NCBI GenBank assembly: GCA_964036045.1 | Contig: OZ038378.1 | Location: 84,196,001 to 84,260,000 of the forward strand | Length of the DNA stretch: 64,000 nt | Direction of reading: 5' to 3' | Source: Eutreptiella sp. 'Long Island Sound 2002' | Lineage: Eukaryota; Protista; Euglenida | Shown here: positions 9,297 to 64,000 of the stretch, in pieces | Layout of the letters: each line of letters starts with the position of its first letter | Position numbering within the stretch: the stretch's first letter is position 1 | Notes under the pieces: generated by a model | Seen by the model: the letters and a program-made list of their open reading frames with translations, nothing else | Told to the model about the DNA's origin: nothing | The model's database searches: none | Program-made: the position numbers and the translations under genes

Positions 9297-9309
9297 CGGG
9301 AAATTCAGG

Positions 9310-22860: not shown

Positions 22861-24919
22861 GTGCGGAACCTCTTCCTGTTTGTCACAGGGGCGACGCCAG
22901 GGGGAACCATGGGGCGCCTCTCCACGACCAAGTGCACCTACCTACCTACCTTGGAAGATGTTGTACGCCGGTCTGTGTCCTTCCCTCGGCCGGTGCATGT
23001 TCCGCATCTTGTTGGCGTGGGTACGCAGGCTGTCGGTGCGGCTTCTGATAGTCTGTTCCCCGTCCGCGGGCCATAAGATCCAGCGTTGCATCTGTGTCAT
23101 CCCAAGCCTGCGTACGTAAGCCGCTACATTGCGTGCCAGGGTGAGCCACGTGGCGGGGAGTGTGTTGTTGGTGGCCGGGGCGTGCACTGTCCAGTGCACG
23201 GTCGTTTTGAGTGCATGCCAGTGTGCCAGGGGGTGGTTAGTGTGGTGGGCCGAGTGTCTGAAACGGTCCCCTGGCTGTTTGCGTCTCTGGTGTGTGTGTG
23301 TGTGCCCTGGTCGCAGTGCCCTTCCCATCCCACTGTGCGCCCCACCAGGTGTGCTGGTGGCACATCAAGGTAACTTTAGGGATGTCCGAGGTGTGGTCAA
23401 GGACCGTCCAGTCCGTGACCTTCAGCCCGACTCGTGGCATACATTGCTCTGGTGGGCCGCTGAGTGACCTGAGTTGTAGCAGTTGGTCCATCAGTTCCGG
23501 CGTCAGGGTGTGCTGTGACGGAGAGTGGCAAGGTGGGTTCTGCAACCCAAGCCACCATGCCTGTTGACGTCGGGAAACTCCAGTACGCGGTGGAGACCCC
23601 CGATTGGTGGCTGTTTTGGGTGTCCGGGAGCTCTAGGGAGAGTGCCTCCCTGATTTGGGACACCGCTTCCGGGTGTATGGTGGTTGGGTGGTGCCAGACG
23701 GTATGTCTGGCGGTGCTGAGGCACGTTTGGGTGGCTCGTTTCGCGGGTTCCATCGTTTGTTGGGTGAGCGTGTGGTCGAGGGCGGCGTTGCTCATTTGTT
23801 CCATCTCTGTGGTCCATCGCTGTCGCCAGTTGGTCGTCTTTGGGTCGCCTACCACACTCTCTACGGTATAACGGATGGCCGACCATTCCGAGTCTGGGTC
23901 AATGGCAATGTCGGCGTCCCTGCTTGCTGTCACCCAGATGGCCTGCATTGGTCTTGCTTGGGGCATTTCGTCATTGTCTCCGAGGGTGGCGCCTTCGATG
24001 GTGGCTGTGCCCTGTATGGTGATGAAGAGGTGTTCAGCTGGCGATAGTTGTATCGGTTTCGTTGTGATGAGGTGTATAGCTTCTACTGCGACCAGCCCAA
24101 GGAGGATCTCTTTCCAGTTAATGGTGCGTGTCGGCAGCGTCCACGTAGGCGTTATGCGGCGGGTGTGGTTTCCGTCACGTGGCAATAGGTAGTTGTCCGG
24201 GATGTGGTGGTTGGTGAGGGGCTTCTGCATGTGTTGGCCTGTGGTGGTAGGTTCGGCGTCTTTTTGGACTGGCCGGTCGTGTTCTTTTAGTGAGGAGTCG
24301 TCTCTGGTTGGGGCTGTGGGTCGCGGTGGAGTGGGGGGTATGTACAGCTCGGGTATTGGTTGTGGTGTTGCTGGTTTGAGGTCGGTGATCGTATGTGCCC
24401 CCGTGGCCGCATCCCCGTGGAGGTATACCTTTAGTGCGGGAACCCCAATGAGGTCCCACTCGCGTGGGTTGTCGGATGCTGAATGAAGGTGGAGATGTTG
24501 TTGATTGGTCCAGCTGTGGTAGGCCAGGATGGCATTGGCGACGGCGGGTTTGTAGCTGTCGGGAAAGGGGTGTCTCGGCGCCGTGTGCCAAATGGTCGCG
24601 GTCCCCCTCGGGCACCAGGTCGTTCCATGTCGTGGGGGGTGTGATCAATGGTTGTCCTGTGTGTCTTGCGGGTACCTCTGTCTCGTACTACGGGCAGTCC
24701 TGCAACATTCGCTCCACGTATCTGACGTCTGTGTATGGCTGGATGCTGTGTTCCGCCAGGGTGCAAGCATGAGCCAGGAGCCTGCACAGCGGGATGACAT
24801 ATGCGTGGACTAAGGGTCAAAAGAATTATTGGACTAGATGACAAGCAAAGTTGACGGGGGGTGGTCATGTTTCTTATAGTTCAATTAGTCTAGCTCATGA
24901 CATGGGCAATTAGTCTTGG

Positions 24920-25150
24920 GGGTGAACTTGTTGCCCTAGCATGATGTACCATGATGGTGCAAGACAACTTATTGTCCTAGCGTGATTCACCATGATGGTG
25001 CGGGGCAACTTGTTCTCCTAGCATGATACACCGCTATCTCAACTTGTTGCCCTAGCATGATCCACCACAATCTTCACGGCCAGCTTGCTGTCCTAGCATG
25101 ATATACCACTTTTTCAACTTTTTGTCCTACCTAGTATGATGTACCATTGT
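24920..25150 (+). repeat. About six ~35-42-bp tandem units with core AACTTGTTGCCCTAGCATGAT (candidate left subterminal repeats)
   Basis: The core recurs at about 24925, 24967, 25008, 25040, 25083 and 25115. The reverse complement recurs at 63939-64000. Confidence 0.85.
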
Positions 25151-26827
25151 ACGGTGCGCTCAATGAAAATCTAATGAGTCCAGCCATCAAATAGCAGCAG
25201 GGTTAAGGATCACAAAGGTTCCACATACATAGGTGTGGCAATGGGCACATTTTGTGACGTTGTGATGCATAGATTGTATGTTTGTGTGGCTGGAGTGCCA
25301 AACATCCAAAACGAAAAAGCTCAATGTCAAATAGCATGAACAACCCCATCGCACTTTTATGACAGCAAAAATTGAAATGATAACTTGACTGTACCACTTA
25401 GGGCTGGCTGGATGGCTATGTTTCGTCTTAGCCCATGGCCTTTCATCCATATATGGGGAGGACCCCGCTTTGACACACGACACCCTGTGTCCTATGCATC
25501 TACCCTGATTTCCACTTTGGGTCCCCAAGTGGCCACCACACTTACCCAACGCAACTGCCCAATTGGCCAACACAGTCATCTATGGGGGGTGCATGTGTGC
25601 ACCCGGTTTGTGACGGCCACTTACGTGACATCTACTTAGGTGGAAAATAGGGGGGCAGATGCATCATAACATTCCCTATGCATGGTTGTATGCAAAGTAC
25701 ATTGCATCTAACGGGGCCAAAAACAACACCCATACTCCTTATACCATGAAACCGTGCTGTTAACTTCAACCATGAACAACCTTGATTACCATGAACCTTC
25801 CATGACCTTATGCTTGTGTGGTGTTTCTTTGCTTCCCTTGACTTGCCTTGCTACCAACACATTTTTGGGAAAAGAATTGCAAAAAAATCAACAGAACAGA
25901 AAGAAAATTTTAAAAAATAAATCTACATGCCTCCAAATGTTACATGTACTTGCTGGAATATGCAATGGCGCGGAAAGTGACCACATACTACTTGCAAAGA
26001 AAACCTAATAACAACACAAACGAGATCCCCGAAAGCTGACGTCAGTACCGGCTCTGCCTCTACCAGCCATCGTCAATGCCACTTGGCACGTGGCTTGTAT
26101 AATGCTCCCACGGATGGAGTGCCCAGGTCTAGCTGAAACCTGTCAACAAAAATTTTCTTGTCATGCAATGGTTAGTGAATAGCATCTATCTCGCACGTGG
26201 TGCATTGTACAAGGTGAAAATAGTGAATAGCATGTACCTCGCAAATGGTGCATTGTACAGTGTGAAAATTTGGCATATGGGTGTTTGTACGACGATTCAA
26301 GGTTGTACATACAATATCTTATAAAAAAAAAAACAAAGCATGCAAAAACAACAAGCCACAAACTACAAAAATCATATGTGAACCCCTTGGGTGCTAATAA
26401 TGTACACCCAAAGCTTCATGCCTGCTTCTTTGGTCCTTATTGGACCCTCACCCTTAGCGGGCCTTCATTCTCGGTGTTGATTCATTCAGCTTTCCTTGAT
26501 AGGGCCTGGAGGCAAAAATGGCAGAAACGGTGGGAGGGGGGGGGGGGATGCATGCAATGCATGACACATGCATGAGGGGGGGCTGCAGGGGGTAATCTTT
26601 TTTTTGATGCCATTTTTGGACATGCCAAACAAATACCGAACCAGCATCCCTCCCTGTGCGCACCTTGGTCCATCCATGTTGACCGCCATCTGAAGATATT
26701 TGGAAAGAGCAAAACTAGAGCATGAAATTATGGGCAAAATTGTGCACCCACTGAGTAGTGCTTGAAAACAACCTCTACGAGGCAATACCACTCGGCTTTG
26801 TGCGCCGAATAATGCCTCTAACCAAAG

Positions 26828-27240
26828 TCTGAGCAAAGAATCTGAACGTTGGGACTGACTGGGCAGACAGCAAAAGCTGCAAAAAATGAGCATATAATGC
26901 AGGAACGGATGTGTTGAATGCAGGGTTCTCAGGAGTTGATCACTATGGCTGGCAGACACTGCAGCACAGGCACGTGGGTGGCACAATGCACTGCAGAAGA
27001 AATGAGCAGGAAAAACCGTGAAAAAACCTCCCTGTGAACAAAATCTGAGCAAGGAATCTGGAACTTGGGACTGACTGGGCAGACTGCCAAATCTCCAGAA
27101 AATGAGCATGCAATGCAGGAACGGATGTGATGGGATGCAAATGTCCCAGGAGTTGATGACTATGGCTGTCAGACACTGCAGCAATGTACAGGAAGGTGGG
27201 TGGCACTTTGCATTGCAGAAGAAATGAGCAGAAAAACCTG
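26828..27240 (+). repeat. Diverged tandem duplication, 2 x ~216 bp
   Basis: tctgagcaaagaatctg...gggactgactgggcagac...gcagaagaaatgagcag starts at 26828 and again at 27044. Confidence 0.85.
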
Positions 27241-27929
27241 GCTGGATCACTCTGCGTCTGAAAAGAGGTCCCCACTCAGCAACCACGACACACTGCTTGT
27301 GTGGACAGGCAAACAGTGGGGATCACTGTCATTCTTCTTCCATGTACTGACCACACACCCGCAGAAAGACACGCTGCTCTCTGGAAAACTCCTCGGTGGA
27401 ATTGTTGTTTGCCGAACCGGCAGTGGAACCAGCGGCAAGTGAACTGAACGCACAAGCACCTGCAATATACAAAAACAGAACTCGAAAACAAAAAGGACAG
27501 TCTACAAGCATTCGAAAACAATGCAAACACAGCATTGGAAACATGAACCTGCACGCTTGCAATCACCACTCAACAATCCACTTGCGTCGCACTTGAATGT
27601 AAGGTCTTTTGTTGTGTTTTGTTGCAAAGACACGTGCATTCTGTGTCGTTTTTGTGAAGTCATTTGAGTCTCGCTTTTCGCTTTCGAATCTGTTTGTTCG
27701 TGTCACAGGTGGAAAACGCCCCTTTTGTTTTGTTGATATTTCGACAGTCATCTCGCTTTTGTTTTTCGCTTTTGAATACGTTTGTTTTGCAGGTGGAGGA
27801 ACAGCTTGCATCGCATCACATCCGTGAATGAAGTTGAAAAACAAAAGCGCTACAAAAGCGAAACTAATCAATGCAACACCAGAGCGAAACAACAAAAGCG
27901 ACTCATCCAAACACAGCAAAATTGGCATG

Positions 27930-30900
27930 GCGATGGACCTGCCATATCAAGGCACTCTGCTATCTACCTAGATGCACTAGCGGACTTGAAATCGTTGCCC
28001 AGCATAGGAACCCACCATGAGACAAGAAGTGTTGAGATGGTAAAGTAACAGTCATAGTGGCCGCCCCAAAAATTTTGGGGCTCGTAGACCCGCCATATCC
28101 AAGCACTATGGAATCTACCTGGATGCACTGGCAGACTTGAAATTGTTGTCAAGCATAGGAACCCACCATGGGATAAGAAGTGTTTTGAGTGTGAGGTAAC
28201 ACTCATAGTGGCAGCCCCAAAAATTTGGGGCTGAATGGACCCACCATATCCAAGCACCATGCAATCTACCTATGTACATTCACTTGCGGCCAAGCATAGG
28301 AACCCACCATGGGGAAGGAAGTGTTGAGAGGGTGAGGTAACACTCATAGTAGCTGCCTCAAAATTTTTGAGGCGAATGGACCCACCTAGACGCACTAGCG
28401 GACTTGAAAATGTGGCCAAGCACAGGATGTTGAAGTTGAAAGCATGCACTAACACTTAGAGTAGCTGCCCCAAAAACTCTAGACTGAGTGAACCCGCTAT
28501 ATGCAGTCACCATTTAATCTACCTAGACACACCGGCGGACTTGAAATTGTTACCAAGCGGGGGAAGTTGCCATGGGGAGATGAAGTGTGCGGTAACACTC
28601 ATAGTAGCTGCCCCGAAAACTCCAAGCTGAATGAACCCGCTATATAGGAGGACTATGTAGACTACCTAGACGCACCAGCGGACTTGAAATTGTTGCCCAG
28701 CATAGGAACCCACCATGGGATAAGAAGTGTTGAGAGGGTGAGCTAATACTCATGTAGCTGCCCCCCAAAAATTTTGGGCTGAACGGAGCCGCCATATCCA
28801 TGCACTATGCAATCTTCCTATGTACACACCTTGGCTCACTTGAAATCGTTACCAGAGAGGTTCACCCCAAAGTTGTGGGGCGGCTACTATGAGTGTTACC
28901 TCAGCCCTTCAACACTTCGTTTCCCATGGTTGGTTCCTATGCTGGGTACCAACTTCAAGTCCGCCAGTGCGCCCACGTAGTTTGCAAAGTGCCTGGATAT
29001 GATGGGTCCATTCGGCCCAAATATTTTTCGGGCAGCTGCTGTGAGTGTTACCTTACCCTCTGGATCCGCCATTTCCAAGCACTATGCAATCTACCTATGT
29101 ACACACACTAGCGGACTTGAAATTGTTGCCAAGCATAAGAACCCGCCATGGGATAAGAAGTGTTGAGAAGGTGAGGTAACACTCATAGTAGCTGCCCCCC
29201 CCCCCAGAAAATTGTGGGCTGAATGGACCGCATCCGAGCACTATGCAATCTACCTATGAAACTTCATTGGCGGACTTGAAATTGTTGCCAAGTGCATGGG
29301 AAACGAATGGTTGACAACGCGGGGCATTACCCATAGTAGCTGCTCCGGAACTTCTGGGCTGAATGGTCCCGCCATATCCAGGCACTGTGCAATCTACCAA
29401 AACGCATGGGCATACTTGAAATCGTTGCCAAGCATAGGAACCCACCATGGGATAAAAAGCAGAGTGGTCCTTAATGGGGGGGAAAAAAGTGCTGCATTAC
29501 ACAGCTTTTCCAAAAAAGCCCGCGGGCGCAGGCACACCATGTGTTGGCAGTGGGCGACCGGCGGTTCGTGGCGGTTGGTAGCGGATGGTGGCGGTTGGTG
29601 GTTGGAGATTGGTGGTTGATGGTGTTTGGTGGTGTTTGGTGGTTGGCGGTTGATCGCCGTTGGCGGTTGGCGGTTGGTGGCGAGTGGCGGACGGCAGCGG
29701 TTTGTGGTGGGCGGCTGATGGTCCCTTGGGGTGGTCCCCAAGGGCGGTCCTTAACAAAAGAAACATATAGTCCCTTATGGACCCCCTGATAAGAAGTGTT
29801 GAGACGGTGAGGTAAGGTAACACTCATACTAGCCGCCCCAGAAATTTTGGGGCGATGGACCTGCCATATCCAGGCACTATGCAAACTACCTAGCGGACTT
29901 GAAATTGTTCCCAGACATAGGAGCCCACCATGGGACAAGAAGTGTTGTGAGGGTGAGGTAACATTCATAGTGGTAGCCCAAAAAGAATTGAGGCGAGTGG
30001 ACCCACCTAGACACACTAGCGGACTTGAAATTGTGGCCAAGCGTACGAACGCACCATGGGAAATGATGTTTTCAAAGGTTGAGGTAACACTCATAGTAGC
30101 TGCCCTCAAAAATTGGGGTTGAATGGACCCGCCATATCAAACTGCCAGTTAATCTAGACACAGCGGCACACTTGAAATTAATGCTAGGCCCGGTAGCCTC
30201 ATGGAGGTTGAAGCATTGAGAGCGTGCTGTAACACTTACAATAACACTCATAGTAGCGACCCCAAAAATTTTGGGGCGATGGACCTGCCATATCCAGGCA
30301 CTCTGCTATCTACCTAGATGCACTAGCGGACTTGAAATCGTTGCCCATGGCAGGTTTCTTGGCTTGGCAACAATTTCAAGACCGCCAGTATGTCTAGGTA
30401 CACTGCATTGGTGCCTGGATATGGCGGGTCCTTTCACCCAAAAATCTTTGGGGCGCCTATTATGATAGTTACCTCACCATCTCAACACTTCTTACCCCAT
30501 GGCGGGTTCCTATGCTTGGCAACAATTTCAAGTCCGCCAGCGCGTCCAGGTGCATTGCATAGTGCCTTGATATAGCGGGTTCATTCAGCCCAGAAATTCT
30601 TGGGGCACCTACTATGGGTGTTGCCGCAAGCTCTAAGGTCTGAAAACTTCTTATCCCATGGTAGGTTCCTCCGCTGAGCAACAATCAACAAATCCACTAG
30701 TGCGTCTAGGGAGATTGCATGGTGCTTGGATATGGTGGGTCCATTCAGCCCCAAATTTTTAGGGCTGCCACTATGGGTGTTACCTCACACTCAAAACACT
30801 TCTTATCCCATGGTGGGTTCCTATGCTTGACAACAATTTCAAGTCTGCCAGTGCATCCAGGTAGATTCCATAGTGCTTGGATATGGCGGGTCTACGAGCC

Positions 30901-33900
30901 CCAAAATTTTTGGGGCGGCCACTATGACTGTTACCTTACCATCTCAACACTTCTTGTCTCATGGTGGGTTCCTATGCTGGGATATGAAGTATTGAGAGGA
31001 TGAGGTCACACTCATAGTAGCTGCACCAAAAATTTGTGGGCTCAATGGGCCTGCCATATCTAGCCACCATTCAGTCTCCCTAGACGCATTGTTGTTGATT
31101 GCCCCAGCCGTCAATTAGGCAGAAGAGAAGGGGAAAGGGCACAAGCAACCATGTTTCAGATTCCCAGGGACGTGCCCAGTGCCCACGTACAGGGCCCCGA
31201 TACAGGGCTTTGTGCCTTCGTTCATTGGTCTCAAAGTGAAACGGACACTGCACAGTGGAGGAAGCGCAACACAAAAGAATGAACATTTGCAAAATCTGTA
31301 AAAGCGCGCATTGATGAATTATAAGACAAACATCTGACATGCAGCAACCTGCATATTCGCCCTTTGTTTGCACAAATCAACTTCGAAACCTGTAACACAA
31401 AAAAAGGCAGAACCAAAAGCAACTTTCAAAACGACACATCAATTAAAATGTAACAAGGCATTGCAGCGAAATGGAACAAACCCATTCAGAGTTCACTGTT
31501 GCAACCACACGTCAAAGTACAAAGAACGTTATGATACAAGAACAAGCACAAAACAGGCACAACCTGCAAAAAATCAACTAATGCTCATTGAATTCTGAAC
31601 TTCAATTGAGCTTGACTTCTGAATTGCACTTCAAATTCATTATTTAACTTGAAAGCTGAACAAAGGGGCATGCAAGTGCACACCCGAGTAACCCCACGCA
31701 ATGCATTGACCTAACATGGCCCAGACACATCAGAAAGGAGTTCTGACATGGCAACGAACATGTGGCCCAGCGCGGGATGTTGACCCATCAGCAGTGCTGA
31801 TATGCATGGGGTGCTTGCTTGTTGGGGAGGAGAGGGGGACCGGTGTGGTGCGCGTTGCAGTGTCCGTTTCACTTTGAGACCAATGAACGAAGGCACAGAG
31901 CCCAGTCAATTTGAGGTTTGGTGCGCACGCCCCAAAATCTTTGGGGTCGCTACTATGAGTGTTATTGTAAGTGTTACAGCACGCTCTCAATGCTTCAACC
32001 TCCATGAGGCTACCGGGCCTAGCATTAATTTCAAGAGTGCCGCTGTGTCTAGATTAACTGGCAGTTTGATATGGCGGGTCCATTCAACCCCAATTTTTGA
32101 GGGCAGCTACTATGAGTGTTACCTCAACCTTTGAAAACATCATTTCCCATGGTGCGTTCGTACGCTTGGCCACAATTTCAAGTCCGCTAGTGTGTCTAGG
32201 TGGGTCCACTCGCCTCAATTCTTTTTGGGCTACCACTATGAATGTTACCTCACCCTCACAACACTTCTTGTCCCATGGTGGGCTCCTATGTCTGGGAACA
32301 ATTTCAAGTCCGCTAGCGCGTCTGAGTAGTTTGCATAGTGCCTGGATATGTCCGCCAATGAAGTTTCATAGGTAGATTGCATAGTGCTCGGATGCGGTCC
32401 ATTCAGCCCACAATTTTCTGGGCGGGGGGGGGGGGGCAGCTACTATGAGTGTTACCTCAACCTTTGAAAACATCATTTCCCATGGTGCGTTCGTACGCTT
32501 GGCCACAATTTCAAGTCCGCTAGTGTGTCTAGGTGGGTCCACTCGCCTCAATTCTTTTTGGGCCACCACTATGAATGTTACCTCACCCTCACAACACTTC
32601 TTGTCCCATGGTGGGCTCCGATGTCTGGGAACAATTTCAAGTCCGCTAGTGCGTCTAGGTGGTTTGCATAGTGCCTGGATACGTCCGCCAATGAAGTTTC
32701 ATAGGTAGATTGCATAGTGCTCGGATGCGGTCCATTCAGCCCACAATTTTCTTGGGGGGGGGGGGGCAGCTACTATGAGTGTTACCTCACCTTCTCAACA
32801 CTTCTTATCCCATGGCGGGTTCTTATGCTTGGCAACAATTTCAAGTCTGCTAGTGTGTGTACATAGGTAGATTGCATAGTGCTTGGAAATGGCGGATCCA
32901 TTCACCCCAAAGTTGTGGGGCGGCTACTATGAGTGTTACCTCAGCCCCTCAACACTTTGTTTCCCATGGTTGGTTCCTATGCTGGGTACCAATTTCAAGT
33001 CTGCCAGTGCGTCCACGTAGTTTGCAAAGTGCCTGGATATGATGGGTCCATTCGGCCCAAATATTTTTCGGGAAGCTGTTGTGAGTGTTACCTTACCCTC
33101 TCTAGTAACAATTTCAAGTGAGCCAAGGTGTGTACATAGGAAGATTGCATAGTGCATGGATATGGCGGCTCCGTTCAGCCCAAAATTTTTGGGGGGGGAG
33201 CTACATGAGTATTAGCTCACCCTCTCAACACTTCTTATCCCATGGTGGGTTCCTATGCTGGGCAACAATTTCAAGTCCGCCGGTGCGTCTAGGTAGTCTA
33301 CATAGTCCTCCTATATAGCGGGTTCATTCAGCCTAGAGTTTTCGGGGCAGCTACTATGAGTGTTACCTCACCCTCTCAACACTTCCTTCCCCATGGTGGG
33401 TTCCTATGCTTGGCCGCCAATGAATGCACACAGGTAGATTGCATAGTGCTCGAATATAGCGGCACCATTCAGTCCCAAATTTTTGGGGCTGCCACTATGA
33501 GTGTTACCTCACACTCCAAACACTGCTTATCCCATGGTGGGTTCCTATGCTTGGCAACAATTTCAAGTCCGCTAGTTTGTGTACATAGGTAGGTTGCATA
33601 GTGCTTGGATATGGTGGGTCCATTCGGCCCGAAATTTTTTTGAGGGGGGGCAGCTACTATGAGTATTACCTGACACTCTCAACACTTCTTATCCCATGAT
33701 GGGTTCCTATGCTGGGCAACAATTTCAAGTCCACCGGTGCCTCTAGGTAGCCTACATAGCCCTCCTATATAGCGGGTTCATTTAGCCTGGAGTTTTCGGG
33801 GCAGCTACTATGAGTGTTGCCGCACACTTCATCTCCCCATGGCAACTTCATCCGCTTGGCAACAATTTCAAGTCCGCCGGTGTGTCTAGGTAGATTAAAT

Positions 33901-33977
33901 GGTGACTGCATATAGCGGGTTCACTCAATCCAAAGTTTTCCGCGTAGCTACTATGAGTGTTACCGCATGCTTTCACG
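27930..33977. repeat. Array of ~150-bp repeats arranged as a large imperfect palindrome (arms ~28437-30290 and ~31925-33977) around a spacer
   Basis: Unit gcactatgcaatctacctagacgcactagcggacttgaaattgttgccaagcataggaacccaccatgggataagaagtgttgag...gtaacactcatagtagctgccccaaaaattttgggctgaatggacccgccatatccaa, period 151 at 27952/28103/28254. Diagnostic variants are mirrored (28501-28620 vs 33820-33960; 30050-30280 vs 31930-32160). Confidence 0.88.
29456..29787. mobile_element. 332-bp insertion with (GGCGGTT/GGTGGTT)-like microsatellite and a 5-bp GATAA target duplication
   Basis: It splits a 150-bp unit at ccatgg-GATAA-gaagtgtt. GATAA occurs at 29451-29455 and 29788-29792. Confidence 0.75.
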
Positions 33978-38816: not shown

Positions 38817-40340
38817 TCACTTCTTGTTATGCTTCTTCGCCAAACTGATGCAAGACTTTAGGTGGTCCTTGGTGATTTGCACCACTCTACACTGGCATGT
38901 CTGCACCGTTACGTTCCGGAAACCACACTCACAGGAAAATGGGACTTGTGTCACAGCGATACACTCCATTTCCACCTTGTCACGCTTGTCACGTGCCAGC
39001 TTGTCAACCCGATAATGCACGTCAAGTCCCTCAATTTTTTCCACCCAATCAACCTTCCAGCCGCTCTTCATCTCTTCGCGTGCAAAGGCAAACCAAACTT
39101 TGGACTTGTCGGTGGTATACGTTGCCATAATGCTGTTGAGGGCGGGAGGTGAATCCTTTACATGCTTCAATGTGACTTGTCGAGTCTCTGCAGCACCACA
39201 TGGATTCTGCGTCAAGGCCATATCATCATCTTCCGAAGGAATGACGTCGGGTGTGCTTTGAGTTCCAGGTGTGTTTTGAGTTTGTGACGGTTGCGAGTAC
39301 TCATGCAACTCTGCGGGTTCCTCGTTGAACCGCACCTTCTTGGAACGAGGTTTTGCCTCGGCACTTGTGCCCTTTCTCTTGGTACCTTTCTTAGGTTTCC
39401 CATCGTTGACATAGCGGTCGCCCCTTGGTTGTCGTTCCTTGGCCGGAGCCTTCTGTCTTGTCCGCAATACCCAAAACCTATCCGCTACTGTGTCAGAGTA
39501 CCGTTCCACGTTTTGCCTCTGCAAACCAACTAGGGCATCAGTTTCCGTGACAATACGGTACTTGTCAACCAAGCTTTTGCCCTTCGCCTTCACTGGTCGA
39601 TGACTGCTCTCCACCGCATTGCTATCCCGCGTGCTAGCTACCCAGTCCGCAAACGTCTTCCCTTGATGCAAATGACAAAGCAACGCATCCACCTCCGGTG
39701 CACGCCAGAACTTTATGAAACCCTCAAGGGCTTTGTAATGCTTTGTCAGCCAATCCCACATCTCCGCACGTGCCTCCTTTGACATGGAAGGAATGGCCCT
39801 GCATCGTTCTTTGAACATTGCAGAGGCAATCTCGCTGTCTATCGTGTTGGACCACTCCTCCACACATCGCAGGAAGTGAAGTAGGCATCCTTGGAACACC
39901 CGGACCACAAAGGCTTCAAACTCATCATCGGACAACTCAATGTTTTGCTTCTTTAGGTACTCTTTCAGAGCGGACTTCAGTCCCTTGAGCTGGGCCTGCG
40001 AAAAATCCATGACCACTGTTAGCCACTGCAAAGGATTGAAACTCGGGTCGGTCTCCTTTGTCAAGTCGAGGAACTTGAGAAATGCCTCATGATAAAACCC
40101 AGCATCTTGCTTTGAGGTAGCCATTCGGAACGTGGTCCACCATTTGGTCAAGTCCTCGTCAAACACCACAATGTTGAGAAGGTACTTCATAAACGTATGG
40201 TCCCAAAATGTTATGTCAACCTCCAAAACCTTGCCTTTTGCCGCAATCTTCAACATGCCGTCACTAGCAAAGACAGGCCTTTCAGGCGTGTTGGTTTTGA
40301 CAGACCGAAGATAATTTGTCATGTCGTCTGGCAGCCAATG
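38817..40340 (-). CDS. MULE/Mutator-type DDE transposase catalytic region (3' part of the interrupted RecQ-MULE gene)
   Basis: LEVDITF (D1, ~40216), VVMDFSQAQLKGL (D2, ~40006), FQGCLLHF (CxxH), DSNAVESSH (E, ~39610) and a C-terminal Cys cluster (FSCECG...TCQC). The first 18 residues of track ORF 38817..40394 are read from the nested element's TIR. Confidence 0.88.
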   Translation of the reverse strand, partial: HWLPDDMTNYLRSVKTNTPERPVFASDGMLKIAAKGKVLEVDITFWDHTFMKYLLNIVVFDEDLTKWWTTFRMATSKQDAGFYHEAFLKFLDLTKETDPSFNPLQWLTVVMDFSQAQLKGLKSALKEYLKKQNIELSDDEFEAFVVRVFQGCLLHFLRCVEEWSNTIDSEIASAMFKERCRAIPSMSKEARAEMWDWLTKHYKALEGFIKFWRAPEVDALLCHLHQGKTFADWVASTRDSNAVESSHRPVKAKGKSLVDKYRIVTETDALVGLQRQNVERYSDTVADRFWVLRTRQKAPAKERQPRGDRYVNDGKPKKGTKRKGTSAEAKPRSKKVRFNEEPAELHEYSQPSQTQNTPGTQSTPDVIPSEDDDMALTQNPCGAAETRQVTLKHVKDSPPALNSIMATYTTDKSKVWFAFAREEMKSGWKVDWVEKIEGLDVHYRVDKLARDKRDKVEMECIAVTQVPFSCECGFRNVTVQTCQCRVVQITKDHLKSCISLAKKHNKK

Positions 40341-41081: not shown

Positions 41082-41113
<32 letters not shown>

Positions 41114-42010: not shown

Positions 42011-42014
42011 GCAG

Positions 42015-42299: not shown

Positions 42300-42359
<60 letters not shown>

Positions 42360-46324: not shown

Positions 46325-46354
46325 GCATTCTAGCGTCCATTTCGTCCATAAGCC

Positions 46355-47220
46355 CGCGGGCGTCTACTGCGGGTGATACCTCACCCCGTCAACAATTCAT
46401 TTCCCAACGCAAGTTCCTACACTTGACAACCATTTTAAGTCCGGCGGCTGATTTGGGTAAATTGCGTAGCGCTAAGGCATGGTGTGTCCATTCCGTCCAC
46501 CATTCTCGGGGCACCTACTATGGGTGTTACTGGACCCCATCAACACTTCATTTCCCAACGCAAGCTCCTACACTTGTGGACAATTTCGATTCCGGCGGTG
46601 TGTTTGGATAGATTGCATGGCTCCAAGGTACGGTGTGTCCATTCCGTCCTGCATTCTAGGGGCAGATATTGTGAGTGATACTTGACTCCATGAACACTTC
46701 ATTTCCGAAAACAAAATCCTACATTTGATGACAATTTCAAGTTCGGCACTGTGTTTGAGTAGATTGCATGGCTCCAAGCTATGGTGTGTCCATTCCGTCG
46801 GGCATTTCGGGCATTCGGCGACCATTTTATCCAGAAGTGTATGGGCAGCTACTCCAGGTGATACCGCACCACGTCAACAATTCATTTCCCAACGTACGAT
46901 CCTACACTTCACGAGAATTTCAAATCCGATGGTGTGTTTGGGTAGGTTACATAGCGTGAAGATGTGGGGTGTGCATTCCGTCCAGCATATGCCAGGCAGC
47001 TAGTGTGTGTGCCACTTGACCCATGAACGCTTCCATTCCCAACGCGAGTTTCTGAAGTTGCGAACAATTTCAAGTCCGCTAGTGTGTTTGGGTCGCTTAC
47101 ATGGTGCCCCATTTTGGTGCGTTCATTTGGTCCACAAGTCCGGAGGCAGCTACTCTTGGTGATTCCTCACCTCGTCAACAAATCATTTCCCAACGACCGT
47201 TCCCACACTTCACGACCATT
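46355..47220. repeat. Diverged array of the ~150-bp repeat family directly upstream of the RecQ-MULE ORF
   Basis: About 6 units of acacttcatttcccaacgcaag(t/c)tcctacacttg...acaatttcaagtccg...gtgtgtttgg...agattgcatgg. Confidence 0.75.
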
Positions 47221-49071: not shown

Positions 49072-52000
49072 TTAGTTGGAGCTCACCATGTTGCTGCCTC
49101 CATGACCCTTTCTTGGCTTGGAGAAGATTTGCTTCCGTTTATAAGCAAGTTTTTGAGGCCTCCCCGCCCCAATCCTGCTGCCACCATGCCCATTTTCCTT
49201 CGCATGGTGAAGTCCTTGAGGTGAAATGGGGCTACCCACGGGGAACCAAACCAACCAACCCTGCTGCCGCACCTCATTCGATGCCATGCCCTGAACAAAT
49301 GTTTCCTTATTTGTATACGCCCTAGTGCCTTGCCACCACTTCACAAAACTGTCGAAACTTCCCTCCTTGTGGGAGGGAGATGTAAACAAGAAATGAGGTT
49401 TGGCACTCCCCCGCCCCCCTAGGCACACTGCTAACATCCTCACAATATCAATGTCGGGGCAGGGTTGAACAATCCTGGCTTCCGCATCTGCTGCCTTTAG
49501 ATCTGCCGACAACGTTGCCATGACCTTGTAGAAGTGCTCAGACCGCTGAGCCCTCTGTAGCAGGAGCCCTTCCATCCATTTGTGAAGACTTTCGAGGAGT
49601 GCATAGCACTCCTCAACAGTGAAAACATCGTACCGCTCCTGGGTGACTTCATTGAGATTCAGCAAACCGTCCCGTGCTAGGGCTCCCAAAATTTTGCTTG
49701 CAGTGAAGCCACAACGTGGCTGCCCATCTGCTGCTCGTCGGACCTTTTTTGTTGGATTCAAAGGCGTGGGGACCTGGCGTCGGAAGCCGGGCTGGCTCCA
49801 GCGTTGAACTTTCACATTCGCGCCAGGCACCGCCCTACGCACTATGCTGGCAAGGAGCTTGCACACTCGTCCAATGACTGAAGAAGTGGCAGCTCCTGCC
49901 TCAAGAATCTCAACCTCCCATTCCAACCCACCCTCACTCCTTGTTGCTTGGGCGATGACAACAAGGCAGTGGCCCACCCCATCAAAGGCACCCCCTGTAC
50001 CTCGGACATCTCTTCGCATATCTTTTGCCTGCGCGGTTCGCTTGGCCTGACCCTTTGGTGCAGGCTTAGTGCAAGCATCGGGTGCTTCCGGCTCCAAGAA
50101 GCCGTTTATGCATATGCGGCGCAAGAAGGTTAGCGCAACATGGCGGCTCAAAGGCTCAGGGAGGTTGCCTTGCCAATGGCGAGCTCGGAGGTCAGTGGAA
50201 AAACCTTGCCGGTATTCAACCAAAGCAACAAGGTTAAGCTGCGCCAAAAGTGGGTCAGTGTCGGGTCGATCAAGTTTCAGCAGCCGTTCGCTCGGAACAT
50301 TCATCTCGAAAGCCATGACGTCCTCAGGGTTGTTGAAATACTCCTTGACAGGTCGAATGGTGGTGTCCCATTCTCCGGAGGAGTTTGCTTGCCCAAGTTG
50401 TCCTTCCATTTGTCGAAGTGCACTCACAAAAAAAAGCCCCCGAACCAACACCATGTCCAACTTGCATTCCCCTGAACATGGCCACGGAATAGTAGAGAGT
50501 CCAACGGGGACACCTTCAACAAAGTCCCCGCCAGGCCTGCCGCTTCCAAAGATCCAACTAAATTTTCTTGTCCTTTCCTCCTTGGAAAAATACATAGCGG
50601 TTGGGCCATCTTTGTTGGGACCTAATGGTGTAGCCCAAAGAACCCGAACCTTATCACCTACCTTCAGAACACCTCTTGCCACTTGATCGGCGACACAAAG
50701 GGCTGCAACAGGGGAGGCCTCCTCCATCCCATTTTGAGTCCCCTTCCCCGTACTGTCCGCTCGTGTTCCCAATTCACTCTCCACATCTTGGAGTCCCCTA
50801 ACCCTATCACTCGAAACTGCAATCGGAATTATGGGTGGGGCTAGCATTGTGGTTGTGGCTTGGGGTGTGGCCAGAGCTAGGGTTGTGGCCCGGGTTGAAG
50901 CTGGGATAGCAACCAGGGCTGGGGCTGGAGCCGCGCTGACGGTTGTGGCTATGGTTGTCGCTGGGGCTAAGGATGGAGCTATGGCGGCGGATGGACTTTG
51001 GGTTGGGGCAAAGGAGGCGGCTGGCATTGTGGACGGGGCCAGGGCTCGGGTGGGGCCGGGAGTTGTGGTTGGGGTTGTGGTTGGGGCTTGCACTGGAACT
51101 TGAACCGCGGTTGTGGTTGGGGCTAAGGATGGGGCTAGGGCTGTGGTAGTGGCGGTTGCTAGGGTTGGGGTTGTCGTTGTGATTGTGCATGGGGCTAGCG
51201 TTGAGGCCAGGGCTGGGTTGGGGGCTAGGGTTATTCCCGCAATTGGGCTTGAAGCTGACTCGGAGGATAGGGCTCGGGGGGGTTGTGGGGATGGGGCTGG
51301 GGTTAGGGCTTGGGGTGTGGCTACAATTGTGGTGACGGGTGATCCTTGGGTTGGGGCCAAGGATGGAGTTGGCGTTGGGGTTGTGGTTGTGGTTGCGGTT
51401 GGTGCTCCGGCTGATGCTTGGGCTGGGGATGCGGCTGCGGCAAGGGCTGGGATTGTGGCTTGCCGGGTAGATTTGGCATGGGCTGTGGCCTGGGCTGGTA
51501 TAGGGACCGCGGTCTGGGCGTTGGCAGAGGTTGTGGCGGAAAGGACGCCTTGGGCCGGGGTTGTGGTTGGGTCTGTGGCTAGGGCTAGGGCCGGGGATGG
51601 GGCCGGCGTTGGTGCTTGGGCTGAGCCTATCACTACGGCTGTGGTTGGGACAGAAACAAAAGTCGTGGCTTCAGGTGGGGTTGCATGTGTGGCTTCAACT
51701 AAATCATTATATCCAACTACCGCTTCACCTTGCTTACACTGGCTTCTCTCGTGGGATGTACCTCGGGTGGAGCTTCGTCCCAGAAATCGTGAGATGGCCC
51801 CATGCAGCTCTTGCCGAAAAGCAGTCGGGTTGAAATCCGGGAAGAGTTCGGTTGATCGAAGGGGAAGATGGGAGAACAGACATTCTTGCAGTTTGGGCAC
51901 TATCCCTGAACGTTCATGTGCAAGGAGCTTGCCAAACCAGCATACAAATACCCCACAGTCCCTATTATTATCTTGCTTTCGAACCGGGACCATCTTGACT

Positions 52001-53624
52001 TCACCAAAATGGAGCGTTGAGGCATTCGGCTCAATGGATCTCCTTGCCATTAGAAACATCTGGATTTTGTCACACATTTGCCGAGAGATGAATGCTGCCC
52101 CACCGCGGCCCGAGTCGAAAACACACAAATGAATGACCAGTCCAACGGGTAGCACCAAAACACCAAAAAAATGATTTCCGGTGTGCACTGGGAAAAAAAT
52201 CTTTTTACCCAGCAATTGTGACTTCCTAAATATCTCGGTAGCAACCTTCTCAGGCCCGTTTTTCAGCATTGTGGCCACTGACAAAGGAAGAAAAGCAATG
52301 TCAGAGCTCAAGTGAGACAGATAGTAGTCGATGACTTGGGCATTTAGCCATCCCCGATGAGACCCCGCAACATTGATACACCGGTCAAGGTCTGCCGCAC
52401 TTACTAGCGCAAAGTCATCAGCCTCGGTAAAAACATCGTTCCCTCCATTCTCAGCAGCCTCCTCCATATCCACGTCCATCGGGCTGGCTTTAGAACGTGA
52501 ATTTGGCAATGGCAGTTGAGGCGTGGTGGTGTCGGGGGTGCCCACGCTAGCAGCGCCGATGTTGAGTGTGTTGGGAGTGGCCACAACGGTCGTAGTGTCA
52601 GTGCCGGCACTGGACGTGGACTAAGAGAACAAAAGAGTGCTATGAGTTGGTGCCCTCTATGAGTGCAAGCACGAAGTGATAGCATTGCCAGACTCAAAAA
52701 GGGCATCTACACGATTTTGATGCAAACATGAAGCACACACCGTTGGCCATTGTTGCTGCTCCCTAATCTCCTCCAAAGCCATCTCTGCCGAAAGGGCAAC
52801 ATCACGAGATGAGCGTCAGAGCTAAACATTGGTTGCAGTGACCGCACTTCAGGTTGGGTGGTAGTACGAATCAGCATGGTAGCTGCGGCTGTAGCGGGAT
52901 TCGTCGTGGACATGCCGGTGATTGCTGCAAAGCCTTGTCACTTGTGCTAAATGGGTAATTCACTGCACACGTGAACTCAAAATTGATTCCATGAAATTCA
53001 ATATGGACACCAACACATACCTTTGGCACTTGAGCATCATCCCTTGTACCCTGCGCTGGAACCAACTCCGCCGGATGCGCAATTTCATGGGGCCAAGGTT
53101 TTGGGCTAGGTTTAGATGCTGAGGATGGTGAAAGCGGTTGATGCGCAGCAGCGGCAATGTTGCTTGTGTTGGTCGCGGTGAGGGACACACCAGCACTGGT
53201 GGTGGACGTGGCCCTCGGTACTGTCTGAAATGAAAATGGTAGTGCTTTGAAACATTGGAACCCCCCAAACCCCGCCACGTGTCCCACATACGTGCATTCA
53301 GGTACATAGCTAATGCATGGACAAAGGGTGCCATGTAAATTTGTGCATTCCAAAAGAAGAACTCTAATAGTTCCCTAACGGCTTCCTATGCAACGTCAAG
53401 GTCCCTTCATTCGCATTCAGTCTGCAGGAATCATGAAAAGATTTATCAAATTGCAAAGATCCATGTCCTAAGAGTTCAATTAAGCAAGGCAAGCTGCAAG
53501 CAACAAGGCACAACACCTGATTTGTTTCCCCATTCCGAATCCTTTTTTTCAGCAAGAGGCGCTCCAACTTCTCCTGTGCCTGCAGCGCCGCCTCCGTCAA
53601 TTCGTTGGCGACGCCATTAGACAT
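49072..53624 (-). CDS. Intron-containing Ulp1/SENP (peptidase C48) family protease gene with a Thr/Pro/Ala-rich linker and further diverged domains
   Basis: Large exon from 52620 (acceptor ttctcttag): GWLNAQVIDYYL, FFPVHTGNHFFGVLV (His), CVFDSG (Asp), KQDNNRDCGVFVC (Gln, Cys). Upstream GT-AG exons: 53624-53517 (MSNGVANELTE...NQ), 53224-53021, 52924-52848. The exon 2/3 junction is one base out of phase in this model. Confidence 0.85.
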
Positions 53625-57467: not shown

Positions 57468-57868
57468 GGCCTGGCGGGAAGACGGCCCAGCCTGGCGGGA
57501 AGACAGCCCCGGCCTGGGCGGGAAGATGGTCCAGCCTGGGCGGGAAGGCCCAGCCTGGCGAGAAGACGGCCCATCCTGGCGGGAAAGCCCAGCCTGGCAG
57601 AAAGACGGCACAGCCTGGCGGGAAGACGGCCCAGCCTGGCGGGAAGATGGCCCCAGCCTGGGCGGAAAGACGGCCCAGCCTTGCAGGGAGGGCCCGCCCT
57701 GGCGGCGGGAGGGCCCCGCCTGGCGGCGGGAAGGCCCAGCCTGGCGGGAAGACAGCCCAGCCTGGCGGGAAGACGGCCCAGCATGGCGGGAAGGCCCAGC
57801 CTGGCAGAAAGACGGCACAGCCTGGCGGGAAGACAGCCCAGCCTGGCAGGAAGACGGCCAAGCCTGGC
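57468..57868 (+). repeat. GC-rich ~21-bp minisatellite (CAGCCTGGCGGGAAGACGGCC)
   Basis: Unit visible directly with 15-, 18- and 21-bp variants. It abuts the 181-bp satellite. Confidence 0.92.
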
Positions 57869-57875
57869 ACACGAC

Positions 57876-60800
57876 GTGTTCCCATGTTTTTGCGCCCGAA
57901 AACTTTGAAAATTTTAGGAAATTGTTTTATGCCTGTATGTCTACCGCAGCAATGCCTGGCCCTTGTTTATGGGCTCCCACCCCCTGGAGATCCCTTGTTC
58001 AGGGAGAGTCCAGGGTGGTGGGTCAGGCTGCAGAGTGTAGGCCACAGACACAGAACATGTTCCCATTATTTTGTGCCTGAAAACTTTGAAAATTTTGAGA
58101 AATTGTTTTATGCCTATATGTCTACCCCAGCAATGCCTGGCCCTTGTGTATGGGCTCCCACCCCCTGGAGATCCCTTGTTCAGGGAGAGTCCAGGGTGGT
58201 GGGTCAGGCTGCAGAGTGTAGGCCACAGACACAGAACGTGTTCCCATGTTTTTGTGCCTGAAAATTTTTAAAATTTTAGGAAATTGTTTTATGCCTATAT
58301 GTCTACCCCAGCAATGCCTGGCCCTTGTGTATGGGCTCCCACCCCCTGGAGATCCCTTGTTCAGGGAGAGTCCAGGGTGGTGGGTCAGGCTGCAGAGTGT
58401 AGGCCACAGACACAGAACGTGTTCCCATGTTTTTGTCCCGGAAAACTTTGAAAATTTTGAGAAATTGTTTTATGCCTATATGTCTACCCCAGCAATGCCT
58501 GGCCCTTGTGTATGGGCTCCCACCCCCTGGAGATCCCTTGTTCAGGGAGAGTCCAGGGTGGTGGGTCAGGCTGCAGAGTGTAGGCCACAGACACAGAACG
58601 TGTTCCCATGTTTTTGTGCCTGAAAACTTTGAAAATTTTAGGAAATTGATTTATGTCTATATGTCTACCCCAGCAATGCCTGGCCCTTGTGTATGGGCTC
58701 CCACCCCCTGGAGATCCCTTGTTCAGGGAGAGTCCAGGGTGGTGGGTCAGGCTGCAGAGTGTAGGCCACAGACACAGAACGTGTTCCCATGTTTTTGTGC
58801 CCGAAAACTTTGAAAATTTTAGGAAATTGTTTTATGCCTATATGTCTACCCCAGCAGTGCCTGGCCCTTGTGTATGGGCTCCCACCCCCTGGAGATCCCT
58901 TGTTCAGGGAGAGTCCAGGGTGGTGGGTCAGGCTGCAGAGTGTAGGCCACAGACACAGAACGTGTTCCCATGTTTTTGTGCCTGAAAACTTTGAAAATTT
59001 TAGGAAATTGTTTTATGCCTATATGTCTACCCCAGCAATGCCTGGCCCTTGTGTATGGGCTCCCACCCCCTGGAGATCCCTTGTTCAGGGAGAGTCCAGG
59101 GTGGTGGGTCAGGCTGCAGAGTGTAGGCCACAGACACAGAACGTGTTCCCATGTTTTTGTCCCGGAAAACTTTGAAAATTTTGAGAAATTGTTTTATGCC
59201 TATATGTCTACCCCAGCAATGCCTGGCCCTTGTGTATGGGCTCCCACCCCCTGGAGATCCCTTGTTCAGGGAGAGTCCAGGGTGGTGGGTCAGGCTGCAG
59301 AGTGTAGGCCACAGACACAGAACGTGTTCCCATTATTTTGTGCCTGAAAATTTTTAAAATTTTAGGAAATTGTTTTATGCCTATATGTCTACCCCAGCAA
59401 TGCCTGGCCCTTGTGTATGGGCTCCCACCCCCTGGAGATCCCTTGTTCAGGGAGAGTCCAGGGTGGTGGGTCAGGCTGCAGAGTGTAGGCCACAGACACA
59501 GAACGTGTTCCCATGTTTTTGTCGCCGAAAACTTTGAAAATTTTAGGAAATTGTTTTATGCCTATATGTCTACCCCAGCAATGCCTGGCCCTTGTGTATG
59601 GGCTCCCACCCCCTGGAGATCCCTTGTTCAGGGAGAGTCCAGGGTGGTGGGTCAGGCTGCAGAGTGTAGGCCACAGACACAGAACGTGTTCCCATGTTTT
59701 TGTGCCTGAAAACTTTTAAAATTTTAGGAAATTGATTTATGTCTATATGTCTACCCCAGCAATGCCTGGCCCTTGTGTATGGGCTCCCACCCCCTGGAGA
59801 TCCCTTGTTCAGGGAGAGTCCAGGGTGGTGGGTCAGGCTGCAGAGTGTAGGCCACAGACACAGAACGTGTTCCCATGTTTTTGTGCCCGAAAACTTTGAA
59901 AATTTTAGGAAATTGTTTTATGCCTATATGTCTACCCCAGCAGTGCCTGGCCCTTGTGTATGGGCTCCCACCCCCTGGAGATCCCTTGTTCAGGGAGAGT
60001 CCAGGGTGGTGGGTCAGGCTGCAGAGTGTAGGCCACAGACACAGAACGTGTTCCCATGTTTTTGTGCCCGAAAACTTTGAAAATTTTAGGAAATTGATTT
60101 ATGCCTATATGTCTACCCCAGCAATGCCTGGCCCTTGTGTATGGGCTCCCACCCCCTGGAGATCCCTTGTTCAGGGAGAGTCCAGGGTGGTGGGTCAGGC
60201 TGCAGAGTGTAGGCCACAGACACAGAACGTGTTCCCATTGGTTTGTGCCTGAAAACTTTGAAAATTTTAGGAAATTGTTTTATGCCTATATGTCTACCCC
60301 AGCAATGCCTGGCCCTTGTGTATGGGCTCCCACCCCCTGGAGATCCCTTGTTCAGGGAGAGTCCAGGGTGGTGGGTCAGGCTGCAGAGTGTAGGCCACAG
60401 ACACAGAACGTGTTCCCATGTTTTTGTCCCGGAAAACTTTGAAAATTTTGAGAAATTGTTTTATGCCTATATGTCTACCCCAGCAATGCCTGGCCCTTGT
60501 GTATGGGCTCCCACCCCCTGGAGATCCCTTGTTCAGGGAGAGTCCAGGGTGGTGGGTCAGGCTGCAGAGTGTAGGCCACAGACACAGAACGTGTTCCCAT
60601 TATTTTGTGCCTGAAAACTTTTAAAATTTTAGGAAATTGTTTTATGCCTATATGTCTACCCCAGCAATGCCTGGCCCTTGTGTATGGGCTCCCACCCCCT
60701 GGAGATCCCTTGTTCAGGGAGAGTCCAGGGTGGTGGGTCAGGGTGCAGAGTGTAGGCCACAGACACAGAACGTGTTCCCATGTTTTTGTCCCCGAAAACT

Positions 60801-62400
60801 TTGAAAATTTTAGGAAATTGTTTTATGCCTATATGTCTACCCCAGCAATGCCTGGCCCTTGTGTATGGGCTCCCACCCCCTGGAGATCCCTTGTTCAGGG
60901 AGAGTCCAGGGTGGTGGGTCAGGCTGCAGAGTGTAGGCCACAGACACAGAACGTGTTCCCATGTTTTTGTGCCTGAAAACTTTTAAAATTTTAGGAAATT
61001 GATTTATGTCTATATGTCTACCCCAGCAATGCCTGGCCCTTGTGTATGGGCTCCCACCCCCTGGAGATCCCTTGTTCAGGGAGAGTCCAGGGTGGTGGGT
61101 CAGGCTGCAGAGTGTAGGCCACAGACACAGAACGTGTTCCCATGTTTTTGTGCCCGAAAACTTTGAAAATTTTAGGAAATTGTTTTATGCCTATATGTCT
61201 ACCCCAGCAGTGCCTGGCCCTTGTGTATGGGCTCCCACCCCCTGGAGATCCCTTGTTCAGGGAGAGTCCAGGGTGGTGGGTCAGGCTGCAGAGTGTAGGC
61301 CACAGACACAGAACGTGTTCCCATGTTTTTGTGCCCGAAAACTTTGAAAATTTTAGGAAATTGTTTTATGCCTATATGTCTACCCCAGCAATGCCTGGCC
61401 CTTGTGTATGGGCTCCCACCCCCTGGAGATCCCTTGTTCAGGGAGAGTCCAGGGTGGTGGGTCAGGCTGCAGAGTGTAGGCCACAGACACAGAACGTGTT
61501 CCCATTGGTTTGTGCCTGAAAACTTTGAAAATTTTAGGAAATTGTTTTATGCCTATATGTCTACCCCAGCAATGCCTGGCCCTTGTGTATGGGCTCCCAC
61601 CCCCTGGAGATCCCTTGTTCAGGGAGAGTCCAGGGTGGTGGGTCAGGCTGCAGAGTGTAGGCCACAGACACAGAACGTGTTCCCATTATTTTGTGCCTGA
61701 AAACTTTTAAAATTTTAGGAAATTGTTTTATGCCTATATGTCTACCCCAGCAATGCCTGGCCCTTGTGTATGGGCTCCCACCCCCTGGAGATCCCTTGTT
61801 CAGGGAGAGTCCAGGGTGGTGGGTCAGGCTGCAGAGTGTAGGCCACAGACACAGAACGTGTTCCCATTCTTTTGTGCCTGAAAACTTTGAAAATTTTGAG
61901 AAATTGTTTTATGCCTATATGTCTACCCCAGCAATGCCTGGCCCTTGTGTATGGGCTCCCACCCCCTGGAGATCCCTTGTTCAGGGAGAGTCCAGGGTGG
62001 TGGGTCAGGCTGCAGAGTGTAGGCCACAGACACAGAACGTGTTCCCATGTTTTTGTCCCCGAAAACTTTGAAAATTTTAGGAAATTGATTTATGTCTATA
62101 TGTCTACCCCAGCAATGCCTGGCCCTTGTGTATGGGCTCCCACCCCCTGGAGATCCCTTGTTCAGGGAGAGTCCAGGGTGGTGGGTCAGGCTGCAGAGTG
62201 TAGGCCACAGACACAGAACGTGTTCCCATGTTTTTGTGCCCGAAAACTTTGAAAATTTTAGGAAATTGTTTTATGCCTATATGTCTACCCCAGCAGTGCC
62301 TGGCCCTTGTGTATGGGCTCCCACCCCCTGGAGATCCCTTGTTCAGGGAGAGTCCAGGGTGGTGGGTCAGGCTGCAGAGTGTAGGCCACAGACACAGAAC
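57876..62400 (+). repeat. Tandem satellite, 25 x 181 bp
   Basis: Unit gtgttcccatgtttttgtgcctgaaaactttgaaaattttaggaaattg...gtaggccacagacacagaac. 4525 bp / 181 = 25. All ORFs here are repeat artefacts. Confidence 0.97.
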
Positions 62401-63630: not shown

Positions 63631-63853
63631 AGAGAATGTTGCTGGTGGCAGCAATGCCCCTTGCCCGTGGTGTCCCATTCCCTCTGAATCCGAGACCAGT
63701 GATCCCACTTACTCTTGGGATTATATTCTGCTGAACAGTTCAATGGGTTTGGTAAGGGTGATTTGCTGTTGTGTTTCGCGTGTTGATTTTGGATTCTCTG
63801 GCCTGGTATAGATTGCGTCCCATTTGGCATTTGGCATCCAAAACAAACGTCGA

Positions 63854-63930
63854 CAAATCCTGAAGTTTGAGAAATCGCAAATCCTGAAGTTTGAGAAATC
63901 GCAAATCCTGAAGTTTGAGAAATCGCAAAT
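63854..63930 (+). repeat. 3 x 24-bp tandem repeat (CAAATCCTGAAGTTTGAGAAATCG)
   Basis: Directly visible perfect repeats. Confidence 0.95.
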
Positions 63931-63938
63931 TTGATAGC

Positions 63939-64000
63939 CATGCTAGGGCAATAAGTTCACGCCCTCAAATTTATTTTCAAGGAGAAATCAACCATGCTAG
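63939..64000 (-). repeat. Inverted copies of the 24.9-kb repeat core (candidate right subterminal repeats)
   Basis: catgctagggcaataagttcac (63939-63960) matches the reverse complement of gtgaacttgttgccctagcatg (24922-24943) at 21/22. A second copy starts at 63993. Confidence 0.75.

Follow-up and report, generated by a model that had tools for sequence, protein, structure and literature searches.

A 39.5-kb element with terminal inverted repeats in Eutreptiella, probably a non-autonomous copy of a giant Mutator-like transposon family

Can a stretch of almost 40 kb, bracketed by two inverted arrays of one short repeat, be a single cut-and-paste DNA transposon? The question is raised by the window analyzed here, a stretch of 64,000 nucleotides from Eutreptiella sp. 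'Long Island Sound 2002' (C1:84196001-84260000 of a 2.28-Gb assembly), in which an earlier reading of the letters alone (the original prediction) had proposed the two ends of one giant element inserted into a long interspersed nuclear element (LINE). Our analysis places the element at window positions 24792-64265 (39,474 bp, of which 265 bp lie beyond the window end). It is very probably one complete, non-autonomous copy of a family of giant cut-and-paste transposons of the Mutator/IS256 kind.

The first evidence comes from the ends. With up to three mismatches allowed, a 19-nt core, AACTTGTTGCCCTAGCATG, has five + strand sites within 24925-25100 and a single inverted one at 63939-63957, against 0.02 matches in shuffled sequence. 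With a degenerate sixth unit at ~25118, the left array that had been described, at 24925-25139 by our analysis, is real; so is its inverted counterpart, and the last bases of the window are indeed part of a further inverted core. Past the window, inverted cores follow at 64040 and 64114, after which the sequence of 24800-24943 recurs in inverted form, as had been expected of this region. Local alignment of the left end with the inverted right end gives terminal inverted repeats (TIRs) of ~150 bp with ~88% identity. A left border had been drawn at 24810/24811; it exists, but that position is 19 bp too far in, as the end lies at 24792 according to >30 copies in the genome. Genome-wide, 30 out of 30 left ends start with GGATGACATATGCG, which is window position 24792, and right ends, read inward, start with GAGTGTATGGCG. 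A census of the genome with terminus patterns returned 30 left and 33 right ends, and none for a control pattern. The core itself occurs 118 times at no more than one mismatch (versus 2 for a control pattern), in a GTT form at left ends and an ATT form at right ends. Among the listed places that were compared with the termini, each core site lies within a few hundred bases of a terminus. The core is therefore not an unlinked repeat dispersed over the genome, the objection that the original prediction had raised against itself. These subterminal cores are probably binding sites of the transposase.

Mobility of the unit as a whole is indicated by a second copy, located 16.5 kb downstream in the same orientation (C1:84276795-84317252; 40,458 bp). 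It is colinear with the window copy from the first to the last base and 99.6% identical over the first 33 kb, the chief difference being the copy number of internal satellites. The homology between the two ends exactly at both termini, which rules out a segmental duplication as their source. The flanks of the neighbor are unlike those of the window copy and form a perfect 9-bp target-site duplication (TSD), AAGCCACAG. As the two copies occupy different sites, one of them with a clean TSD, the ~40-kb unit moves as one element. The proposal that both arrays are the ends of one giant TIR transposon is thus supported by the TIRs, by the colinear second copy and by the TSDs of the family.

A genome search for other loci with the same paired ends and gene content found further copies besides this neighbor. 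An exact 9-bp TSD is present in seven end pairs, namely the C1 neighbor and pairs on C4 (21.7 kb), C5 (11.6 kb), C3 (11.6 kb), C2 (4.6 kb), C19 (2.5 kb) and C23 (169 bp). The duplication is partial for pairs on C21 (28 kb; 8/9) and C14 (4.1 kb; 7/9), and absent from several others, including pairs 72-96 kb apart. The family TSD has a length of 9 bp and no fixed sequence, and the predicted ~9-bp TSDs are thus a property of the family, not of the window copy. Internal deletions in the structure seen in the window copy gave rise to the 21.7-kb and 11.6-kb elements. Since both 11.6-kb copies carry the identical deletion at different sites, this non-autonomous derivative has itself moved. Overall, family members range from 167-bp derivatives consisting of TIRs only to gene-bearing copies of ~40 kb. 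Among 17 copies, the outermost 400 bp show 99-100% identity, which points to recent activity and a young family.

The long open reading frames (ORFs) of the element, encoding the helicase, the transposase and a Ulp1 protease, are all on the - strand (Table 1), in agreement with the predicted co-oriented RecQ-transposase and Ulp1 genes. Among solved structures, the helicase part is closest to E. coli RecQ (1.9e-28, in an alignment that extends across the zinc-binding region) and to BLM, WRN, RECQ1 and RECQ5. The two halves of the split gene were searched separately, and the intact public protein P0063 (1688 aa) served as the natural full-length form. The helicase part is 99% identical to residues 258-1185 of P0063 and the transposase part to residues 1182-1688, while P0063 itself spans the junction uninterrupted (...KDEAY-WLPDD...). 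In five other copies, at C11:30316115 onward, C1:161530296-161602300 and C23:21674671-21758836 and on contigs C554 and C598, helicase and transposase share a single open frame of 1703-1705 aa. A weak SET match in P0063 (E 0.049) hints at a possible SET-like N-terminus in intact copies.

The window copy has two lesions in this gene. First, a nested 3195-bp TIR element splits the frame; it is missing from the copies with the 1703-1705-aa frame. Close to each of its ends, an 11-bp unit forms arrays that are inverted to each other, and AC-rich microsatellites lie inside. A Euglena-type nonconventional intron was considered for this insert. The published code of such introns (PMC12501133) has CAG at +3 and, with a purine coming next, CTG at -8; by eye, the ends mismatch this code and the candidate was set aside. 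Second, a deletion of ~1.9 kb has removed the first 257 codons together with the sequence upstream of them. The gap between the helicase and the 151-bp repeat measures 49 bp in the window copy and its neighbor versus 1932 bp in the copies on C11, C23 and at C1:161.5 Mb, and residues 1-257 of P0063 have no tblastn match in the window copy. Judged by its sequence, the window copy is non-autonomous, with a broken transposase gene. Both C1 copies carry both lesions, so that a defective 40-kb element was mobilized, presumably in trans. Elsewhere in the genome (C13:23.61 Mb, C17:38.00 Mb and C4:84.46 Mb), a divergent helicase match adjoins a transposase match at 27-35% identity, and the genome therefore holds several older families with the fusion architecture.

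To which superfamily does this transposase belong? Its relatives are rare, with 58 out of 1.84 billion cluster representatives at E <=0.001. A word-indexed search of proteins, run both from the ORF and from a profile of 15 members, returned near-identical fragments only and was uninformative. Full-length relatives are P0008 and P0075 (~1660 aa each) and P0083 (1290 aa), all three with the domain order DEAD, Helicase_C, RecQ zinc-binding region and transposase core; their SWIM or MULE matches are weak. Across 15 aligned homologs, D130, C170 and H173 never vary, N259 and E262 hardly do, and the first D, at position 60, is conserved. The Pfam family MULE (PF10551; Mutator-like element) matches 3/15 homologs and Transposase_mut (PF00872) 2/15, all below the cut-off and with a best E of 2.5e-4; a SWIM match in P0008 and P0075 (E 0.0075) is below the cut-off as well. 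The nearest ESM Atlas clusters that bear a name are all MULE/SWIM. The AlphaFold (AF2) model covers core residues 40-300 with a predicted local distance difference test score of ~90, and the Cys-rich tail of the window copy's transposase is modelled with low confidence. The best solved fold is the ISCth4 transposase of the IS256 family (Foldseek E 1e-4; VIA-align Z 12.2 over 217 residues, root-mean-square deviation 4.8), followed by Hermes (Z 10.7) and the P element (Z 9.0). Mutator elements have TSDs of 9-11 bp, seen here in the family and not in the window copy, and long TIRs (~100 bp or more), which at ~150 bp plus subterminal arrays are present. Based on the CxxH core, the homolog matches, the fold, the 9-bp TSD and the long TIRs, we read the family as a divergent Mutator-like lineage. 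The Mutator-like transposase of the original prediction is thereby upheld as a resemblance (D-D-CxxH-E, weak MULE matches, IS256 fold).

Table 1. Features of the giant element and its left flank, in window coordinates.
Feature	Position	Strand	Details
Left flank, GC-rich dispersed repeat	24292..24791	.	Interrupted at 24791; >40 paralogs, 70-86% identity, cross the junction point
Left TIR	24792..24943	+	Terminus GGATGACATATGCGTGGACTAAGGG; same in 30 genomic left ends; ~88% to inverted right end
Left subterminal array	24925..25139	+	5-6 cores, spacing 34-41 bp
Complex of direct and inverted ~150-bp repeats, ~6 kb	27936..33975	.	Tandem Repeats Finder (TRF), self-BLAST
Transposase 3' part	38817..40394	-	525-aa ORF; DDE core D60, D130, C170xxH173, E262; Cys-rich tail
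Nested TIR element, 3195 bp	40339..43533	.	16-bp TIRs TGTACCCTTCGTGAAC, 2-bp duplication; splits helicase-transposase ORF
RecQ-family helicase part	43520..46324	-	934-aa ORF; DEAD + Helicase_C (Pfam), RecQ-type zinc-binding region
Site of ~1.9-kb deletion, then 151-bp x2.9 internal repeat	46325..46806	.	Versus intact copies
Ulp1/C48 cysteine-protease ORF	49072..52584	-	1170 aa, uninterrupted; Pfam PF02902, 2e-6, above curated cut-off
Internal satellites, 21-bp unit x19 and 181-bp unit x25	57469..62400	.	~5 kb; copy number varies among element copies
24-bp x3.2 repeat adjoining right subterminal array	63854..63930	.	TRF
Right subterminal core array and TIR, start	63939..64000	-	Continues to 64265; terminus read inward GAGTGTATGGCGTTTGGACTAAGGG

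Taken as a transposition event, the insertion would have proceeded as follows. Transposase from intact copies would have moved both C1 copies in trans, binding the subterminal cores and excising the whole 40-kb unit, and insertion would use 9-bp staggered cuts. Loss of flanking DNA during or after insertion would explain both the missing TSD and the left repeat that does not resume.

Several points weigh against reading the window copy as a complete transposon of this kind. The TSD predicted beside it is absent in any register, as the left flank ends in ...CTGCACAGCG and the right flank starts with GTCCCCGGGG...; its two ends are therefore not provable as one insertion, and it is possibly a recombinant of two. 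Moreover, the junctions at 24792 and 64265 were read as assembled, and an assembly error may be present there. Regarding the superfamily, the 525-aa transposase ORF has no Pfam match, the MULE and Transposase_mut matches of the homologs are all below the curated cut-off, and the lead of IS256 over hAT is only ~1.5 Z. Finally, we only infer that the fused helicase would aid the processing or repair of the ends of so large a unit, and that the Ulp1 protease would act on SUMO-dependent silencing by the host.

The flanks bear on the first of these points. The element does interrupt the left repeat, as had been claimed; that this repeat is a LINE was not confirmed, since the long ORFs scanned in 9.4-24.9 kb have no Pfam match. 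A LINE does occur at 2045-5299 on the - strand, where a 1084-aa ORF combines Exo_endo_phos with a reverse transcriptase; the left-flank repeat shows no similarity to this apurinic endonuclease-reverse transcriptase ORF and is unrelated to it in sequence. A constant strong strand asymmetry (AT skew ~-0.3, GC skew positive) extends across the GC-rich left repeat at 7000-21000 and 23000-25000. All paralogs of the left-flank repeat run on past the junction point as TCCATTGTTGGGGTGCC..., and no such sequence occurs in the 60 kb that follow the element (64266-124000), contrary to the predicted resumption of the repeat downstream. The right flank is instead a 212-bp tandem array (15.4 units, 75% GC, 64265-67523), which starts exactly at the element end and matches no left-flank-repeat paralog. 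It is followed, between the two giant C1 copies, by a Ty3/gypsy retrotransposon (~71656-78696) with a 720-aa gag-like ORF and a 1564-aa pol ORF comprising RVT_1, RNase H and integrase.

An inversion or translocation was considered, and its partner was sought in the genome. No right end is followed by TGCACAGCG, and none of the ~29 left flanks examined ends in GTCCCCGGG. The candidate was rejected as the assembly holds no reciprocal junction, which indicates a loss of DNA rather than an inversion. Our preferred, albeit tentative, account of the missing TSD is a recombination between two copies in the same orientation, with deletion. An adjacent deletion associated with the insertion itself is somewhat less probable, and an assembly error or another cause takes up what is left.

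A related alternative is that the stretch was never one inserted element; it would be a chimera formed from two copies, or a join made in assembly, its ends stemming from different insertions. The lack of a TSD, the unrelated flanks and the lack of a reciprocal junction are all in line with it, as are the other end pairs without TSD and one pair with swapped TSD halves. The interior, however, is fully colinear with a neighbor that bears a perfect TSD and thus has the structure of a single element. In addition, a recombinant of two copies is already the favored explanation of the missing TSD, so that this alternative differs mainly in the history it assumes. We consider it unlikely, yet not negligible, and retain the reading as a single element.

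Two other loci display discordant flanks. The pair with swapped 9-bp TSD halves (ATTTGGGCA, CAGACGTCC) consists of two small copies at C15:56891348-56891924 and C15:57504675-57506645, in opposite orientation and ~610 kb apart. This is the signature of a ~610-kb inversion, which arose either when copies recombined with each other or in the assembly. On C23, the 169-bp TIR-only copy with the perfect TSD (C23:19602394-19602562) has a left flank identical to that of a gene-bearing copy 2.07 Mb away (C23:21674671); at the presumed right end of that second copy, the flank is another one. The shared left flank suggests a further copy-mediated rearrangement or duplication.

The assignment to a superfamily has a rival as well, namely a place in AcademH, a lineage of the Academ superfamily, instead of Mutator. 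As published, AcademH elements combine a superfamily 2 (SF2) helicase with a transposase and have 9-10-bp TSDs, which the 9-bp TSD and the DEAD/Helicase_C helicase found here match (PMC10045372; PMC10799480). Like that of Academ, the present transposase is without a Pfam family (PMC5751038), and one of its distant relatives is fungal (P0057, from Coprinopsis). Nonetheless, published descriptions of Academ do not list a CxxH signature, which is indirect evidence against membership. The homologs also show the weak MULE, Transposase_mut and SWIM matches, the best structural match is to an IS256-family enzyme and the Atlas neighbors are MULE. Membership of AcademH is improbable in our view, and we maintain the Mutator-like assignment.

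The remaining features concern the cargo and the length of the element. The Ulp1 ORF retains all of its motifs (His, Asp, Gln...Cys). The ~150-bp repeat family, which had been reported at several sites, is real according to TRF and self-BLAST and specific to the element, as nearly all its genomic matches lie inside copies of the giant element. The other long ORFs inside the element match no Pfam family. That the great length is secondary, with nested insertions and satellites having swollen a transposon of modest size and the 40-kb unit not itself transposing, is suggested by a coding share of only ~8 kb out of 39.5 kb next to a 3.2-kb nested element, ~5 kb of satellites and a ~6-kb repeat complex. 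It is nevertheless very improbable, since both C1 copies, which occupy separate sites and of which one has a clean 9-bp TSD, share the same nested element, deletion and repeats, so that the ~40-kb unit moved after acquiring them, and since the ~150-bp repeats are element-specific and no reverse transcriptase or other foreign transposable-element protein was found inside.

Cut-and-paste transposons of 40 kb are rare, and the two C1 copies, one of them with a clean TSD, show that such a unit moves intact. With their identical ends, family members of 167 bp to 40 kb provide a natural set of substrates, which could be used to test size limits and the contributions of the helicase and Ulp1. The copies without TSD and the pair with swapped TSD halves further indicate that the family drives deletions and inversions in the genome, although the C15 case may be an assembly inversion. 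Fusions of a RecQ helicase with a transposase are known for AcademH and KolobokH, while no description for Mutator-like elements was found in the literature searched. We tentatively suggest that the family represents an undescribed Mutator-like lineage, in which a RecQ-fused transposase (in intact copies also SET-like) moves ~40-kb units carrying Ulp1. Recombination between its copies may now be rearranging host chromosomes, as proposed because of the swapped C15 TSD halves and of the missing TSD and lost flank of the window copy. If this proves true, the helicase would be what lets a cut-and-paste enzyme handle so large a substrate.

How does the family compare with known systems? Kolobok elements have a 4-bp TTAA TSD. 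KolobokH, known only from fungi, likewise joins a DDE transposase to a RecQ helicase, but with the helicase downstream (PMC9587614). Here, the helicase is upstream of the DDE core and the TSD measures 9 bp, and membership of KolobokH was rejected on both domain order and TSD length. AcademH (Kojima 2020, as cited in PMC10045372 and PMC10799480) shares with the present family a DNA transposon encoding a DEAD/Helicase_C (SF2) helicase and a 9-10-bp TSD. With Academ compared by description, the core found here stands apart by its CxxH signature and its affinities to IS256 and MULE, which speak for a different superfamily. With Mutator/MuDR and IS256, the family has in common the 9-bp TSD, the ~150-bp TIRs with subterminal repeats, the CxxH DDE core, an N-x-x-E-S motif, the IS256-family enzyme as nearest solved structure and the many internally deleted, non-autonomous derivatives. 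Unlike in Mutator/MuDR, the transposase is downstream of a fused RecQ-family helicase, with a possible SET-like N-terminus in intact copies, the element is ~40 kb and thus far beyond typical MULEs, and the Pfam MULE match stays below threshold. Plant KI-MULEs are Mutator-like elements that carry Ulp1/C48 protease sequence. The present family similarly places Ulp1/C48 in a Mutator-like element, but as a separate 1170-aa ORF with intact catalytic motifs and alongside a transposase encoded by the same element.

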